Positions 2,666 through 61,040 of a stretch of 64,000 nucleotides of DNA are shown in pieces. How positions within the stretch are numbered: the first letter of the stretch is position 1; every line of letters begins with the position of its first letter. A model generated the notes under the pieces. The model searched no databases, had not been told where the DNA came from, and was given only the letters and a program-made list of their open reading frames with translations. Made by a program: the position numbers and the translations under genes. The stretch comes from Octopus sinensis (taxonomy: Eukaryota): NCBI RefSeq assembly GCF_006345805.1, contig NC_042997.1:72602001-72666000 (forward strand). The letters are read 5' to 3'.

Positions 2666-2740
2666 GATTGTTGGAGAATATGGCACCAGATGGGGTAGAA
2701 ACAACTGGGCTGCAAGTGGAGTATTTAGTAAAGGGTCCAT
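2666..2740 (+). CDS. Internal coding exon (75 nt, phase 1-1) of unknown host gene; (G)LLENMAPDGVETTGLQVEYLVKGP
   Basis: Strong acceptor TTTCCTCTATTTCGTTTCTCTAG, donor CAT|GTAGGT, open phase-1 frame, size matches sibling exons. Confidence 0.75.
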
Positions 2741-3536
2741 GTAGGTATAATATATATCAATGCATACACACACATAAACACATACATACGCACATACACA
2801 CACACACGTACACACACATACTAACATACACATCCATATATCTCTATATATAAAACTGAAATGCGTTTTTACCGCTTGGATCGCTTTCAATGCTACTACG
2901 TCCCGTCCGATTCGCTCCAAAATTTACAGGGACATGTAGAATGAGGTGACGATGCCCGTGGGCTACCTTAGAAATCCCTATCTTAAAAGGTGTGGTTGCT
3001 AGGGGCCATCTTCCTCACTCACGCTATTTCCTCCATTCCCCCCTAACTCCCCTTCATGAATAACTTTGACAAGTCCACTACCGTTATTTAACGTATCTGT
3101 CTTCCTCAACTCACTCTCGGTATTTCCTCTCTTCCAAGAACATTTTCACTCACTCTATCTCTTAGCTTCCCATATCTTTCACTTATGTATCTGTCTGCAT
3201 TCATTCAGAGAAACAAATATTCCATCGCCATCGCCATCGCCATCGCATTCTATTGTCTACCTGTCAACGCGCCGATCGACCAAATACAAAGACAAGGTTC
3301 CCTGCTTACCAGTCGAATTCAGCGTCAACGCTCACGTATGAGAGAGACTCCAACACACACACACACACACACACACACATATATATATATAATGTGTGCA
3401 TTATGTGGTCCAATTTTATATTTTATATATTTTCTATATTATATTTTTATTTTTATGTTTTTGTTTTTGGTTTTTTACTCTTTCATTTGCCTATTACTGG
3501 TTTTATCTCCAATTTAATTTGTACATATATATACTC

Positions 3537-3942
3537 TTTACTCTTTACTCTTTTACTTGTTTCAGTAATTTGACTGCGGCCATGCTGGAGCACCGCCTTT
3601 AGTAGAGCAAATCGACCCCGGGACTTATTCTTTGTAAGCCCAGTACTTATTCTATCGGTCTCTTTTGCCGAACCGCTAAGTAACGGGGACGTAAACACAC
3701 CAGCATCGGCTGTCAAGCAATGCTTGGGGGACAAACACAGACACACAAACACACACATACATATACATATATATGCATATATACGACAGGCTTCTTTCAG
3801 TTTCCGTCTACCAAATCCACTCACAAAGCTTTGGTCGGCCCGAGGCTATAGTAGAAGACACTTGCCCAAGGTGCCACGCAGTGGGACTGAACTCGGAACC
3901 ATGAGGTTGGTAAACAAGCTACTTACCACACAACCACTCCTG
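3537..3942 (-). mobile_element. tRNA-derived SINE, family A (full length)
   Basis: tRNA-like head with GGTTCCGAGTTCAGTCCC B-box, central (CA)/(TA) tract, shared tail with the other family A copies. Confidence 0.9.
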
Positions 3943-4166
3943 TATATATAATGCGTGCACACACACACACACACACCTATATATATATATTTATAATGTG
4001 TGCATTATGTGGTCGGTCGGTTCAGCTGAAAATATGCACACCTATGTTAAAAGTACTGGCAAGTTTGCATGACAACTATATTTTTCCTCAAATTAAAGGC
4101 GTGACCTCTACGACAAAATTCCTCATCTTATAAAATGTGGCCCCAGTAGACCCGAATGAAATCGGG

Positions 4167-5380
4167 TTATATTTTATACAGGTTTCTAGTTTTATCTGAT
4201 TGTACTATAATTCCTTCCATGTTACGCATTTCTTTAATTCTAATAGCTTGATTTGTTAGATATTCATTATGTCTATTTGAGTATTTATGAAATTTAATAT
4301 TTTTCACCACCTTAGAAATATTATCCTCTAAAACCTGTATATCCCTATTATACAGGGGTTCATTTCTAGGTTTAAATTTAGAATTGATATAATTACTATT
4401 CTCTACATCGTTAACATTAGATATGTTACAATTATTGTAGTAGGTTTTGCATTTAATCCTATTAATAAAATCTTTGATATTATTAAATTTCAAAATATTT
4501 TTTTTCAATATGGTATAGTAATATCCTTCAAAGATGAATCGCAAAATAGCGGTTCTATCTTACCTGTAAGTTCCATAACTAACGAAATTGAGAGTTAAAT
4601 ACACTCGATAAACGTTAGTTATAAATATAAATATAATAATAATAATAATAGTAGAGAATATAATTGCAAAAATTACGGGGGAAAATTCAAATTAACAATT
4701 TTAAATCAAATTTCACAGTATGTATATATGTATATAATTTAGAGAAAAATCTCTATCAAACAATTCAATAATGAAAGATGTTATTCACACCATATAGAAA
4801 ACATATACTAAAAAAACTTATTCTAAAACTCAATAAAGTACAATAAATAGTAAATAGATAGTAATAAAAAAAATCAATTCGATTTAAAATCAAATCGATC
4901 TAAAATTAATTCTATTAAAAATATAGTCACTCATCAGGTCTAAAATAAATAATTAAAAAATGATAATAGAATAAATGTACTTATCTTAACTTATACTAAT
5001 TATCAAATAAATATATAAAAATGCGTCATCCTCTTTATAAAGTTCTACGTATTACGTTTAAATTTTTAGTTAACAAAAATCCTTCGATAAGATAAGTTAT
5101 GCTTTTCTTTTAAGAAATATTGTTAAATGCTTTTCGATTATTTATAGTTAATACACGTATTTTTATATATTTATTTGATAATTAGTATAAGTTAAGATAA
5201 GTACATTTATTCTATTATTATTTTTAAAATTTATTTTAGACCTGATGAGTGACTTTTTAAATCGAATTGATTTTATTATTATTATTATTATTATTATTAT
5301 TATTATCATATATTTGAAAATATAGCCATGAAACGCGTGTAGTCTTTTTACTACTATTTACTATTTATTGTATTTTATTC
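4167..5380 (-). mobile_element. Penelope-like element 5' part with inverted pLTR
   Basis: ORF 4167-4544 ends IVQSDKTRNLYKI (N-terminal DKTRNLY motif of Penelope ORFs); inverted repeat about 4870-5025 vs 5155-5275 containing CTGATGAGTGAC. Confidence 0.65.
5238..5345 (+). ncRNA. Hammerhead-like motif in Penelope pLTR, stem II damaged and carrying an (ATT)n insert
   Basis: AGAC-CTGATGA-GTGAC...GCCAT-GAAAC(GCGT)GTA-GTCT. Confidence 0.5.
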
Positions 5381-58369: not shown

Positions 58370-58444
58370 AATTTGGTCAGAGTTTAAGTAGTAATGAGCC
58401 AATCCATGTAATACCCATTCGCATAGAAGAAATGGAAAATACCG
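58370..58444 (+). CDS. Internal coding exon (75 nt, phase 1-1); (E)FGQSLSSNEPIHVIPIRIEEMENT
   Basis: Acceptor TTTGCTTCCTTTTTGCAG, donor CCG|GTAAAT; paralog of exon 55056 with frame-preserving 12-nt length difference. Confidence 0.85.
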
Positions 58445-59771
58445 GTAAATATGTATATATATATTTTTATGTAAGTGTGTGTGTGTGTGTGTGTGTGTGT
58501 GTGAGTGTATGTACGTCTATGTAAACATATGTGTGTATGTATATTTAGAAGCATATATTTAGTATGTGTGCATTGATCATCCATGACCTTTTTAAGAGTT
58601 CATCCTTTTTTTGTTCCATGCCAGTTCGGTCTCAGATCTGCTGGGATTGGCTTGCGTAAAGATTAATGAGTTTAGTTCCTTATGAGGGGAGGGAGAGGAG
58701 AAGAGGAAAATAGGGTAGGTGTGTGTAAACGTCTAGTTTGCATGTTTGTGTGGTCGAGTCGGTTCTGTGAGTGAATGTGTATGTTTGTCTTGTGTGTGTG
58801 TGTATGTGTGTATGCATGTATGTATGTGTGTGTGTGTGTGTGTGAGTGCGTGCTTATCTGAGTGCATTCCAGTATGTATTTTCATATCTGCGTGTGCGTG
58901 CGCTGTGAATAGGTAAGCGACTGTATGCACGGTTGCGTGTGTGTTTTCTTGTGTGTGTGTATGTGCGCGTGCGTTCATGTGCGTATGTACGCATGTGTGC
59001 GCACGTACCTGAGCATGTGTGTGTGTGTAAGTGTGTATGCATGGTGTGTGTATGTGAATGTGTATGTGTTTGCTTGTTCTTGCCTTTCTGTGTGTGTGTA
59101 TTTACGTTTGCGTGTGTGTGAGTACCCGTCCGTGCGTGTGCGTAGATGTGTATGGTTGTGTATAGGAAGTGTTCATAGCTATATGCATTTATTTGCACGA
59201 ATTTCCTTATATGTATTTATTGGCACGAATTTCCTTATATCCGGCTGTCATTCTAACACAAATTTACATCAAGAATCAATGCAAACCAAATACAAAAGTG
59301 AAGAAAAACAATTTAGTTTTCTCACAAAATAGAAAGAAGTAAAACCCATCCAGTCTGAAAGCAAGAATTATTAAATATTGTAGAAAGATGAAGCACTTGG
59401 GTATATTTATCGTAGTGTGGCATATAATTGTTAAATATTCATCGTTTTCATTCATTCTGTCTCTACTTCTTCTAGGAAAGGTATGAACATCACTCAATCT
59501 TACGCCTTAACTTTGCTGTTAACTAAAAAATCAACATGAAGCCATTGACAGCTTGTTAGAAAACTATAAGCTACCGAACAATATTTTACAATATTACTGG
59601 ATGAAATTCTGAATTTGTCAGTTTTGCTTGTAATTGTTTTAGAAACAATAAAATAAATCCCATTTAAGTAATTTTAGCATTATACGCCCAACATATTTAT
59701 GGGCTTTTGCCAACGGAAAATTCTTACTATAGAAAAATACTTATTCGTTTGCAGTTAGTTTTATAAAGGAA

Positions 59772-60982
59772 CTAGCATTAAAGACCCGTCGTTGCCGGGT
59801 CATAGTGCTAGTGCATTTATATATGTGTATATATATGTGTACATATTACATGTACATCTATATATATACATCTACACATAGAATACAAAATACAAAGTTA
59901 TATCTTGATATCGCTAGTGATAACAATACTCAAAATATATAACAGACAGGAATTGTTAGCCCGTCTCTTGTAATTTCGATCAATTGCATCTTGTCCTCCC
60001 TCTTGTATAGAAGTGTGGCTACAATCCAACGGCTGCAGCGAAATTCATTTTTGGACTTCCTTCTATCGAAGACATTTTAACAAAAATACTTCCGTGTAAA
60101 CGGTGAAAATATTGTCAATTTCCCCAAACAGGGACACAATTCAATTTTTAAACAATAACCAAAGCTCCTTCTCCCAAAGCGGGAGGGTTACGGTTTACAT
60201 TTATTTAACAAATGCAACACAACAACGCTTCGCTTACGAGGAACCAACAAACGTGATAACAATAGTTAAACAGAAATAATAATAACAACAAACCTTACGG
60301 TAAACCAAAAAGCAGTACTCTGTTGAAGCTATAGGCCTTTATGGATCAGAAATAAACTAACAGCGGTACTCAGTAGAATGCTTAATGCTAGCTAATTAGC
60401 AAATAATCTAATGTAAAAGCCGTGCACACCTCCATCTGGACTATTCCATTTCTGCACTTAAATTTTATTTTTTATTTATTCCCATTCATGGGAAACTACT
60501 GATTCAAGTTCAAGTCATTGATGCAATTTTATACCAATTGCTATATTTTTACTTTTGTTATGTTACGATTATATTATACTTTAGTTTGATTTTAATTATT
60601 ATTTACGACATATAATTCAATTGTTATTATTATTTTTATTGTTAAGTGAAAGTATCTGACATAAAATAGAGAAATGTTTTTGTTTCACGTAATACTGAAA
60701 TAGTGGAGAAGATATGATATTGCCATGGGCTCGCTCTAGGCAAGAAGTTGAACTTTGTTTTGCCCATGAAACTACATGGACCCTAAGTAAGGCATGTGTA
60801 AAATTTGAATGAAATTGGTTGTGTAGTTCTCAAGTTTTAGGGAATCGTTGTGGAGAAGATATGATATTGCTGTGGGCTCGCCCTAGGCAAAAAGTTAAAA
60901 TGAAATTGGTTGTGTAGTTCTCAAGTTTTAGGGAAACACACAGACAGACAGACACACATTCTCAGTTTTATATGTATAAAGA
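59772..60982 (-). mobile_element. Non-autonomous Helitron-like element
   Basis: Minus strand A|TCTTTATACATATAAAA start at 60982; GACCCGGCAACGACGGGTC hairpin and CTAG|T end at 59772; internal tandem duplication 60705-60935. Confidence 0.65.
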
Positions 60983-61004
60983 TATGCTTTAATTTTTCTT
61001 TCAG

Positions 61005-61040
61005 AGGTTGACGAAGCGTTATGTAATGACGATGCAAAGA
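61005..61040 (+). CDS. Internal coding exon (36 nt, phase 1-1); (E)VDEALCNDDAK
   Basis: Acceptor TTTAATTTTTCTTTCAG, donor AGA|GTAAGT, open frame. Confidence 0.75.

Follow-up and report, generated by a model that had tools for sequence, protein, structure and literature searches.

A tandem array of short phase 1-1 exons in Octopus sinensis, probably part of one under-annotated gene for a glutamate-rich repeat protein

The question raised by the locus studied here is whether a series of short open segments, widely spaced on the + strand of an Octopus sinensis contig, are the exons of one gene. The window analyzed is a stretch of 64,000 nucleotides (NCBI RefSeq assembly GCF_006345805.1, contig NC_042997.1, positions 72,602,001 to 72,666,000 of the forward strand), and coordinates are positions in this window unless otherwise stated. 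An initial annotation had proposed, for positions 2666–61040, a hidden gene built from acidic mini-exons of equal phase. The interpretation favored by the results, with a probability of roughly 65%, is that these segments are the coding exons of a single + strand gene, under-annotated and apparently restricted to Octopus.

All the segments and size classes listed in the initial annotation were recovered: thirteen exons, named below by their first position, and one more segment of 78 nt lacking its GT. All thirteen exons are bounded by an AG acceptor and a GT[A/G] donor, and all are of phase 1-1, with lengths (36–78 nt) that are multiples of 3. In the phase-1 frame there were no stops in any of the thirteen, and the remaining two sense frames contained nearly always 1–4. 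The claim of a single continuous phase 1-1 frame was confirmed by concatenation in genomic order, which gave 876 nt or 291 codons without any stop. The composition of the corresponding product includes 18.9% Glu, 8.6% Leu and 7.6% Pro, with an isoelectric point (pI) of 4.45. Two points of the original description needed to be narrowed. Acceptors with pyrimidine tracts had been described; the AG is present in every case, but the tracts of exons 16099 and 38990 are weak. The peptides had been called rich in Glu and Asp; this suits the 5′ half, but the net charge of exons 47972, 54171 and 55056 is 0 to +1. Concerning the junctions, a rule had been deduced by which exon 2666, ending in T, creates a stop with many partners, and its arithmetic was correct. 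Stops are created in 9 of the 78 ordered exon pairs, all nine due to that final T, and the permitted successors of exon 2666 are 6941, 35192 and 47972, which can follow it because each of them begins with TA.

The use of these splice sites was considered in Octopus vulgaris. The window is ~95–99% identical to chromosome OX597814.1 of assembly GCA_951406725.2, at ~67.44–67.51 Mb, with an intron substitution divergence of ~0.3–1.5%, most differences being microsatellite indels, which places the window in the same species complex. Positions in that species are given in locus coordinates L001 and L002, such that window position 1 corresponds to L001 57162, 39013 to L002 10001 and 64000 to L002 34775. 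Two adjacent models are annotated at the locus, CAI9715271.1 (238 aa) and CAI9715272.1 (113 aa), both as 'hypothetical predicted protein', and both were rebuilt exactly from exon coordinates, except for one M/I difference. Of the 13 exons, 11 have splice sites that appear in these models. Five (16099, 26178, 40329, 54171 and 55056) are read with identical boundaries in the phase 1-1 frame, which upholds the claim that the segments are exons of one + strand gene; for 6941, 33058, 35192, 38990, 58370 and 61005 at least one of the two splice sites is used. Exon 40329 is used in both models. The word 'hidden' was thus appropriate only in part, as two fragmentary models cover the locus and exons 2666 and 47972 are in neither of them.

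The coding sequence (CDS) of CAI9715271.1 starts at the internal ATG 6955 of exon 6941 (donor 7015) and comprises 16099, 26178, 33060–33111 and the start of 35192; its path also includes upstream units and a rearranged duplicate, and exon 16099 occurs in it twice. That of CAI9715272.1 starts at ATG 39013 in exon 38990 (donor 39043) and continues with 40329, 54171, 55056, 58370–58407, 61005–61040 and an exon past the window; it omits exon 47972, and reads 61005–61040 with unchanged boundaries in phase 0 (RLTKRYVMT.QR). The way in which each model ends is informative. CAI9715271.1 takes the GAG/ acceptor 33060 rather than TAG/ 33058 (slashes mark splice junctions), and due to the frame shift so produced it stops at TGA 35197–35199. 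CAI9715272.1 takes an internal donor of exon 58370, at 58407, which also shifts the frame. Both models end because of these splice choices, while the canonical boundaries keep the frame open across both places. The last exon of CAI9715272.1 is located at L002 40865–41125, ~6.1 kb past the window end. In the annotated frame it has a stop after 5 codons, and the phase-1 frame remains open through 86 codons up to the stop. Since the canonical boundaries leave the frame open and the terminal exon has no stop over that length, we infer that the two annotated models are one gene, split into two truncated parts. The predicted 86-residue tail, which reads SVNNRMSSRKRQ...GKWAVF, has a pI of 11.6 and a net charge of +17, and the protein search gave no relative of it.

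The same models could be taken at face value, as two separate small genes, the first (CAI9715271.1) ending in exon 35192 and the second (CAI9715272.1) running from 38990 to VLTTE and a stop codon. Both have an ATG and a stop codon, and exon 38990, with its weak acceptor and no family likeness, would suit a first exon. Besides, the annotation pipeline, based on EVM, combined Iso-Seq data with RNA-seq assemblies, protein alignments and ab initio predictions (PMC10700109). Nevertheless, both CDSs begin at Met codons internal to array exons, and both ends need frame-shifting splicing, through the disfavored GAG/ acceptor 2 nt past TAG/ in one case and the internal donor of exon 58370 in the other. 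Moreover, CAI9715271.1 runs through the rearranged duplicate and contains exon 16099 twice, whereas canonical boundaries give one unbroken open reading frame (ORF) in whose frame the terminal exon is open for its 86 codons. Two genes as annotated are thus considered unlikely.

The possibility of a chance origin of the segments was addressed with a uniform scan, which required a pyrimidine tract ≥0.7, a donor matching at ≥4/6 positions, 30–129 nt divisible by 3, an open frame and Asp+Glu ≥15%. It gave 14 acceptors in the + strand phase 1-1 class versus 2–7 per class in the five strand/phase classes used as controls, so the excess of + strand phase 1-1 candidates over the controls is real. With a chance background of ~4 candidates per class, the non-homologous candidates 21792, 29367 and 41203 are expected noise. 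The initial annotation had also noted shared motifs, and the mutual homology of the units was evident both in a hidden Markov model (HMM) of the unit and in DNA alignments. The HMM matched nine window units, which were also in its training set, and five upstream units, always on the + strand, with a best score of 5 bits on the − strand. The common motif is the C-terminus of the unit, x-(N/K)-(L/E)-E-x-(E/D)-(T/I)-P. In the DNA alignments the flanking intron was seen to be duplicated along with the exon, including a TTCAT element, the pyrimidine tract and a gtatgaat donor context. In the pair 55056/58370, identity was 67% in the exon and 77% over the 100 nt upstream, and this pair gave also the sole significant cross-match in an otherwise noisy short-peptide tblastn inside the window. 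Exon 55056 is a recent duplicate of exon 58370, upstream intron included. The TTCAT element is conserved and precedes the pyrimidine tract, ~20–22 nt 5′ of the acceptors of exons 40329, 47972, 54171, 55056 and 58370, and of L001 42300 and 43649; it is plausible that the co-duplicated element is a branch-point motif.

It could still be argued that the segments are fortuitous AG...GT open stretches, or else dispersed copies of a repeat or of a transposable element (TE), in a sequence that is AT-rich (36% G+C), full of microsatellites and of TE fragments in its introns, and in which each strand/phase class yields 2–7 candidates by chance. This explanation does not account for units that are homologous and share one orientation and one frame. 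No unit was found inside the scanned TE-like ORFs, the assembled product had no Pfam match, the splice sites of 11 exons are those used in the GenBank models, and the upstream units are under purifying selection, as described next. Such an origin is very improbable.

The array continues outside the window. The O. vulgaris locus has further exons of the family within the 16 kb upstream: FADNTMPEELESEAEETKNLELETP, FEDYTKPEELESEAEVTENLEMETR, FEENAIPEELESETEEAEDLELETL and SKGYTIPGVLESEADKTDGFEVDP. These units are near-uniform, strongly acidic and 78 nt long, with the consensus EFxxNxxPEELESEAEExxNLExETP and 33% Glu in the four concatenated. Compared to them, the window units are more diverged and mixed in charge, and a charge gradient is apparent along the locus, from about −9 per upstream unit to about 0 in exons 47972–55056 and then to the basic tail. 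For the three most similar upstream units, the ratio of non-synonymous to synonymous differences per site (pN/pS) was 0.17–0.29 (Fisher p from 3e-5 to 4e-3), and their synonymous divergence resembled the divergence of their intron flanks. These upstream units are protein-coding and under purifying selection. Extension of the analysis into the flanks, which the initial annotation had advised in search of the terminal domains, was successful as to the continuation of the gene on both sides and the location of the probable terminal exon, but not as to the N-terminus.

The case of the window units is less straightforward. Compared as paralogs, their pN/pS was ~1.2, not significant. Concerning conservation relative to O. 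vulgaris, there was 1 substitution in 744 nt of exons versus 4.0 expected from the introns, which did not reach significance (P = 0.09) between species that are too close. These two results, together with the presence of dead units (26846–26923, without donor, and L001 ~52607, with both splice sites lost) and with the lack of relatives of any species in the searches beyond the two O. vulgaris models, could be explained if the window array were a decaying relic, non-functional or merely transcribed as non-coding RNA, only the uniform upstream units being coding. Against this, at 56–67% nucleotide identity among window units, 13 of 13 retain the phase-1 frame, the length divisible by 3, the AG and the GTR. 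In shuffled exons each was open with a probability of 0.11–0.37, and the joint probability under shuffling was ~1e-8, though it refers to exons that were chosen for their openness. Furthermore, the frame runs on into the long open terminal exon. Constraint on the window exons would then be visible indirectly, on frame, length and splice sites alone. A relic seems to us a rather unlikely explanation.

Returning to the single coding gene, several observations weigh against it, besides the pN/pS of the window paralogs and the non-significant conservation of the exons just mentioned. No model sharing the exons or the tail was found in the searches from O. sinensis, O. bimaculoides or other species, and the N-terminus of the gene was not found either. 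The missing exons 2666 and 47972 are a discrepancy with both annotated models, and the models themselves may be without transcript support, given the mixed evidence combined by EVM. The weak acceptor of exon 38990 makes a first exon of a second gene conceivable, and the rearranged ~54-kb duplicate present in the O. vulgaris assembly distorts CAI9715271.1 and complicates the gene model.

The explanation proposed is as follows. The gene would have grown as a mini-exon and the intron sequence flanking it were duplicated in tandem, the duplicated block containing TTCAT, pyrimidine tract, AG and a donor of gtatga type. Each phase 1-1 exon of 36–78 nt would encode a unit of 12–26 residues with x-(L/E)-E-x-(E/D)-(T/I)-P at its end. 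The start of the array would lie 16 kb or more upstream of the window, and the gene would most likely end ~6 kb downstream of it, where the terminal exon, read in the phase-1 frame of the chain, would add the basic tail of 86 residues. Symmetric exons could be skipped, duplicated or lost in frame, with the exception of exon 2666, which would need a successor starting with TA. Because the symmetric phase preserves the frame, length would be tunable in evolution and, potentially, by splicing. Length change in evolution is shown by the array itself: the locus is a birth-and-death exon array, in which live, diverging and dead exons are found side by side. As to combinatorial splicing, it is possible, the lone hint being the omission of exon 47972 by CAI9715272.1.

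The predicted product would form a polyanionic chain that is mostly disordered, its short helices interrupted by prolines, with the basic tail as a cap. Disorder had been anticipated in the initial annotation, and the calculations agreed with it: in a charge-hydropathy plot the tail, like the upstream units and the window exons, fell on the disordered side, and AlphaFold2 run on CAI9715271.1 gave isolated helices only, with no fold (mean predicted local distance difference test score, pLDDT, 57.6; predicted template-modeling score, pTM, 0.15). The product is thus probably a floppy, glutamate-rich repeat protein. Our best guess for its role is that of an electrostatic spacer, or of a molecule that binds cations or basic proteins, perhaps interacting with its own tail. 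A more ambitious version would be a cephalopod-specific gene of >120 kb encoding a polyanionic entropic spacer, convergent in design with the titin PEVK and Glu-rich segments, with repeats that interact with their own basic tail or with basic partners, and with a length set by exon skipping and by the copy number of exon blocks, of which the 54-kb O. vulgaris duplicate would be an example; this is speculative and, in our estimation, quite improbable.

No homolog had been recognized initially, and the searches run now did not change this. Word-indexed searches of 5.8 billion proteins, non-exhaustive to the point that one query holding CAI9715272.1 exons did not return CAI9715272.1, gave no protein beyond the two O. 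vulgaris models, and neither did phmmer against 1.84 billion cluster representatives. With the 437-residue assembled product (without exons 33058 and 35192), Pfam at E≤10 gave only two unrelated, sub-threshold families and the sequence search of the PDB gave no relative.

In the absence of homologs, the comparison with known systems concerns architecture. The titin PEVK region consists of units of ~26–28 residues encoded by symmetric cassette exons of ~75–84 nt that are differentially spliced. The likeness to it suggested in the initial annotation holds for the exon architecture, a tandem array of short symmetric exons of a single phase (thirteen here, 36–78 nt) expanded by exon duplication, with proline-punctuated, Glu-rich, disordered units. 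It does not hold for the sequence. No PPAK match was found in Pfam at E≤10, and the P+E+V+K+A fraction, taken on concatenated segments, reached 0.42 with the window exons and 0.52 with the four upstream units, versus the PEVK_Finder criterion of 0.54, which applies per exon (PMC6469411). No Ig or FN3 exons and no giant host gene are visible in the annotated surroundings: within ~134 kb the O. vulgaris annotation contains only the two domain-less models, and Pfam on 10 long window ORFs detected TE domains only, this stretch stopping short of the true 5′ end of the gene. Finally, the present gene would end in a predicted basic tail, and not in further sarcomeric domains.

In tropoelastin all exons are phase 1-1 cassettes, any of which can be skipped in frame, and the protein is hydrophobic and rich in Gly, Val, Pro and Ala, with Lys-containing cross-linking exons. 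The array shares with it the phase 1-1 exons throughout, but has 18.9% Glu and few Gly, does not alternate hydrophobic and Lys-Ala exons, and gave no sequence match. The predicted product resembles the Asp-rich matrix proteins of molluscan biomineralization, which are lineage-specific, repetitive, strongly acidic and fast-evolving; in contrast with them, the acidity here comes from Glu (19–33% in the two acidic segments), Asp being just 4–6%.

A closer resemblance is to the class of disordered proteins encoded by successive symmetric exons (Schad et al. 2013, PMC3632108). Runs of symmetric exons that share one phase, especially 1-1, are enriched in disorder, derive from internal tandem duplication and frequently undergo alternative splicing; calpastatin and the acidic region of ASPH/junctin are examples, and the titin PPAK motif belongs to those families that are over-represented among symmetric exons coding for disordered regions (PMC3632108). 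The present locus has thirteen such exons in a row and at least four more upstream, all of phase 1-1; neighboring exons are homologous, short and of motif size, and disorder is predicted. It differs in having no sequence relation to any member and in being apparently restricted to one lineage. So, the architecture is of a known kind, and the gene is apparently new and lineage-restricted, without known relatives. On the other hand, arrays of PEVK type are poorly recovered by gene predictors (PMC6469411), and the fragmentary character of the models at this locus fits that difficulty. If there is one gene, the O. vulgaris annotation splits it, through frame-shifting splice choices, into two truncated hypothetical proteins, and the locus would be a concrete example of how repeat-exon arrays are mis-modeled in cephalopod genomes, as well as a clean and young case of gene growth by duplication of exon plus intron flank. 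As the architecture is well known and no function is assigned, the value of the case lies in annotation and in illustrating evolution, rather than in a conceptual advance.

The individual exons, all on the + strand, can now be described in order. Exon 2666..2740 (75 nt, phase 1-1, (G)LLENMAPDGVETTGLQVEYLVKGP) has the donor T/GTAGGT, being the only exon with a final T, and is a weak family member (14.2 bits with the unit HMM, E 0.009). Exon 6941..7015 (75 nt, phase 1-1, LTNTMSKELESQAEDTDNYKTGIP), beginning with TA, scored 33.5 bits. Exon 16099..16152 (54 nt, phase 1-1, VLISENEMAQNLEEDAP), of weak pyrimidine tract, has (CTAT)n after its donor. Exon 26178..26255 (78 nt, phase 1-1, YKFMIPMPHGEELEAVMQNLETETL) scored 24.1 bits. 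Exon 33058..33111 (54 nt, phase 1-1, ELPSEAELEQTSEIEMP) has a tandem acceptor, TAG/AG/, at 33056–33059; of its two AGs, offset by 2 nt, the first (33058) preserves the frame of the array and the second (33060) shifts it. Exon 35192..35269 (78 nt, phase 1-1), which also begins with TA, has the donor gtatgaat, like the upstream units. Exon 38990..39043 (54 nt, CLPDSTSMEQRMEMEKS) is open in phase 1-1, with a weak acceptor and no recognizable likeness to the family, and could be an alternative first exon instead of a member of the array.

In the 3′ half, exon 40329..40406 (78 nt, phase 1-1, NEQMIKENNAFRESRFTQKQELDIP) scored 21.1 bits. Exon 47972..48049 (78 nt, phase 1-1, VEPKERPTHALRNIILAHKKEMDIP) begins with TA, has strong splice sites and scored 20.2 bits, and the intron 3′ of its donor is similar to that 3′ of the donor of exon 40329. 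Exon 54171..54248 (78 nt, phase 1-1, TELKLKQETGHPYRDFIRKLEAEIP) was matched by the unit HMM. It is followed by exon 55056..55118 (63 nt, phase 1-1, YQSKAPIHVVPLRKEEMETP) and by exon 58370..58444 (75 nt, phase 1-1, FGQSLSSNEPIHVIPIRIEEMENT), which contains the internal donor 58407/gtaata. Exon 61005..61040 (36 nt) reads VDEALCNDDAK in phase 1-1, and has one substitution relative to O. vulgaris.

Concerning the dead units, pseudo-exon 26846..26923 (+ strand, 78 nt, SEEYMIRDGYILEFEQAQNLGIESP) has an intact acceptor and an open frame, but its donor is replaced (CCAG/ttacacacac), a state found also in the O. vulgaris assembly. Since a (CA)n run occupies exactly the expected place of the donor, microsatellite expansion may have killed this exon. 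The dead unit of the upstream region, at L001 ~52607–52654 (EFEENMIPEELELEIL), has a mutated acceptor (TGG), an internal deletion and no GT donor. Microsatellites near donors were observed at 16170–16344, 39443–39678, 26924 onward and 58445 onward, with (TATC)n ~400 nt downstream of exon 38990 and (GT)n directly after exon 58370. Two matches to array sequences were discarded: that of 'KELDIP' at 51069, a chance match and not an array unit, and that of L002 39677 (SRFTQEQD), located inside a longer unrelated ORF. The idea that the product could be the octopus arterial elastomer was also dropped, as the literature gave nothing usable.

Larger duplications were observed as well. In the O. vulgaris assembly there is a tandem duplicate of ~54 kb, L001 2058–40593 versus L001 55963–99478 (window ~1–51376), the first copy of which holds an inversion and a deletion, with breakpoints at window ~51376 and inside one of the upstream acidic exons (L001 ~40593). 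It is possibly a genuine segmental duplication in which exon blocks were copied, but possibly also an artefact of assembly or of haplotigs. Within the window, in the intron between exons 6941 and 16099, positions 10695–12300 and 12281–13891 form a tandem duplication of 1.6 kb with 99.3% identity, and both copies map to a single one in the O. vulgaris assembly, so that the two genomes differ structurally here.

Concerning other features, Rfam and tRNA scans of the window gave nothing. The introns are filled with TE remnants, at 31653–32690 (+), 40932–41786 (+), 48804–50541 (−), 17443–18000 (−) and 23387–24532 (−), among which there are a transposase of the mariner/Mos1 type (HTH_48, Transposase_1) and two fragments of the long interspersed nuclear element (LINE) type with a reverse-transcriptase zinc-binding domain. 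Also among these remnants are an ORF with C2H2 zinc fingers and one of 382 aa with a sub-threshold GIY-YIG match.

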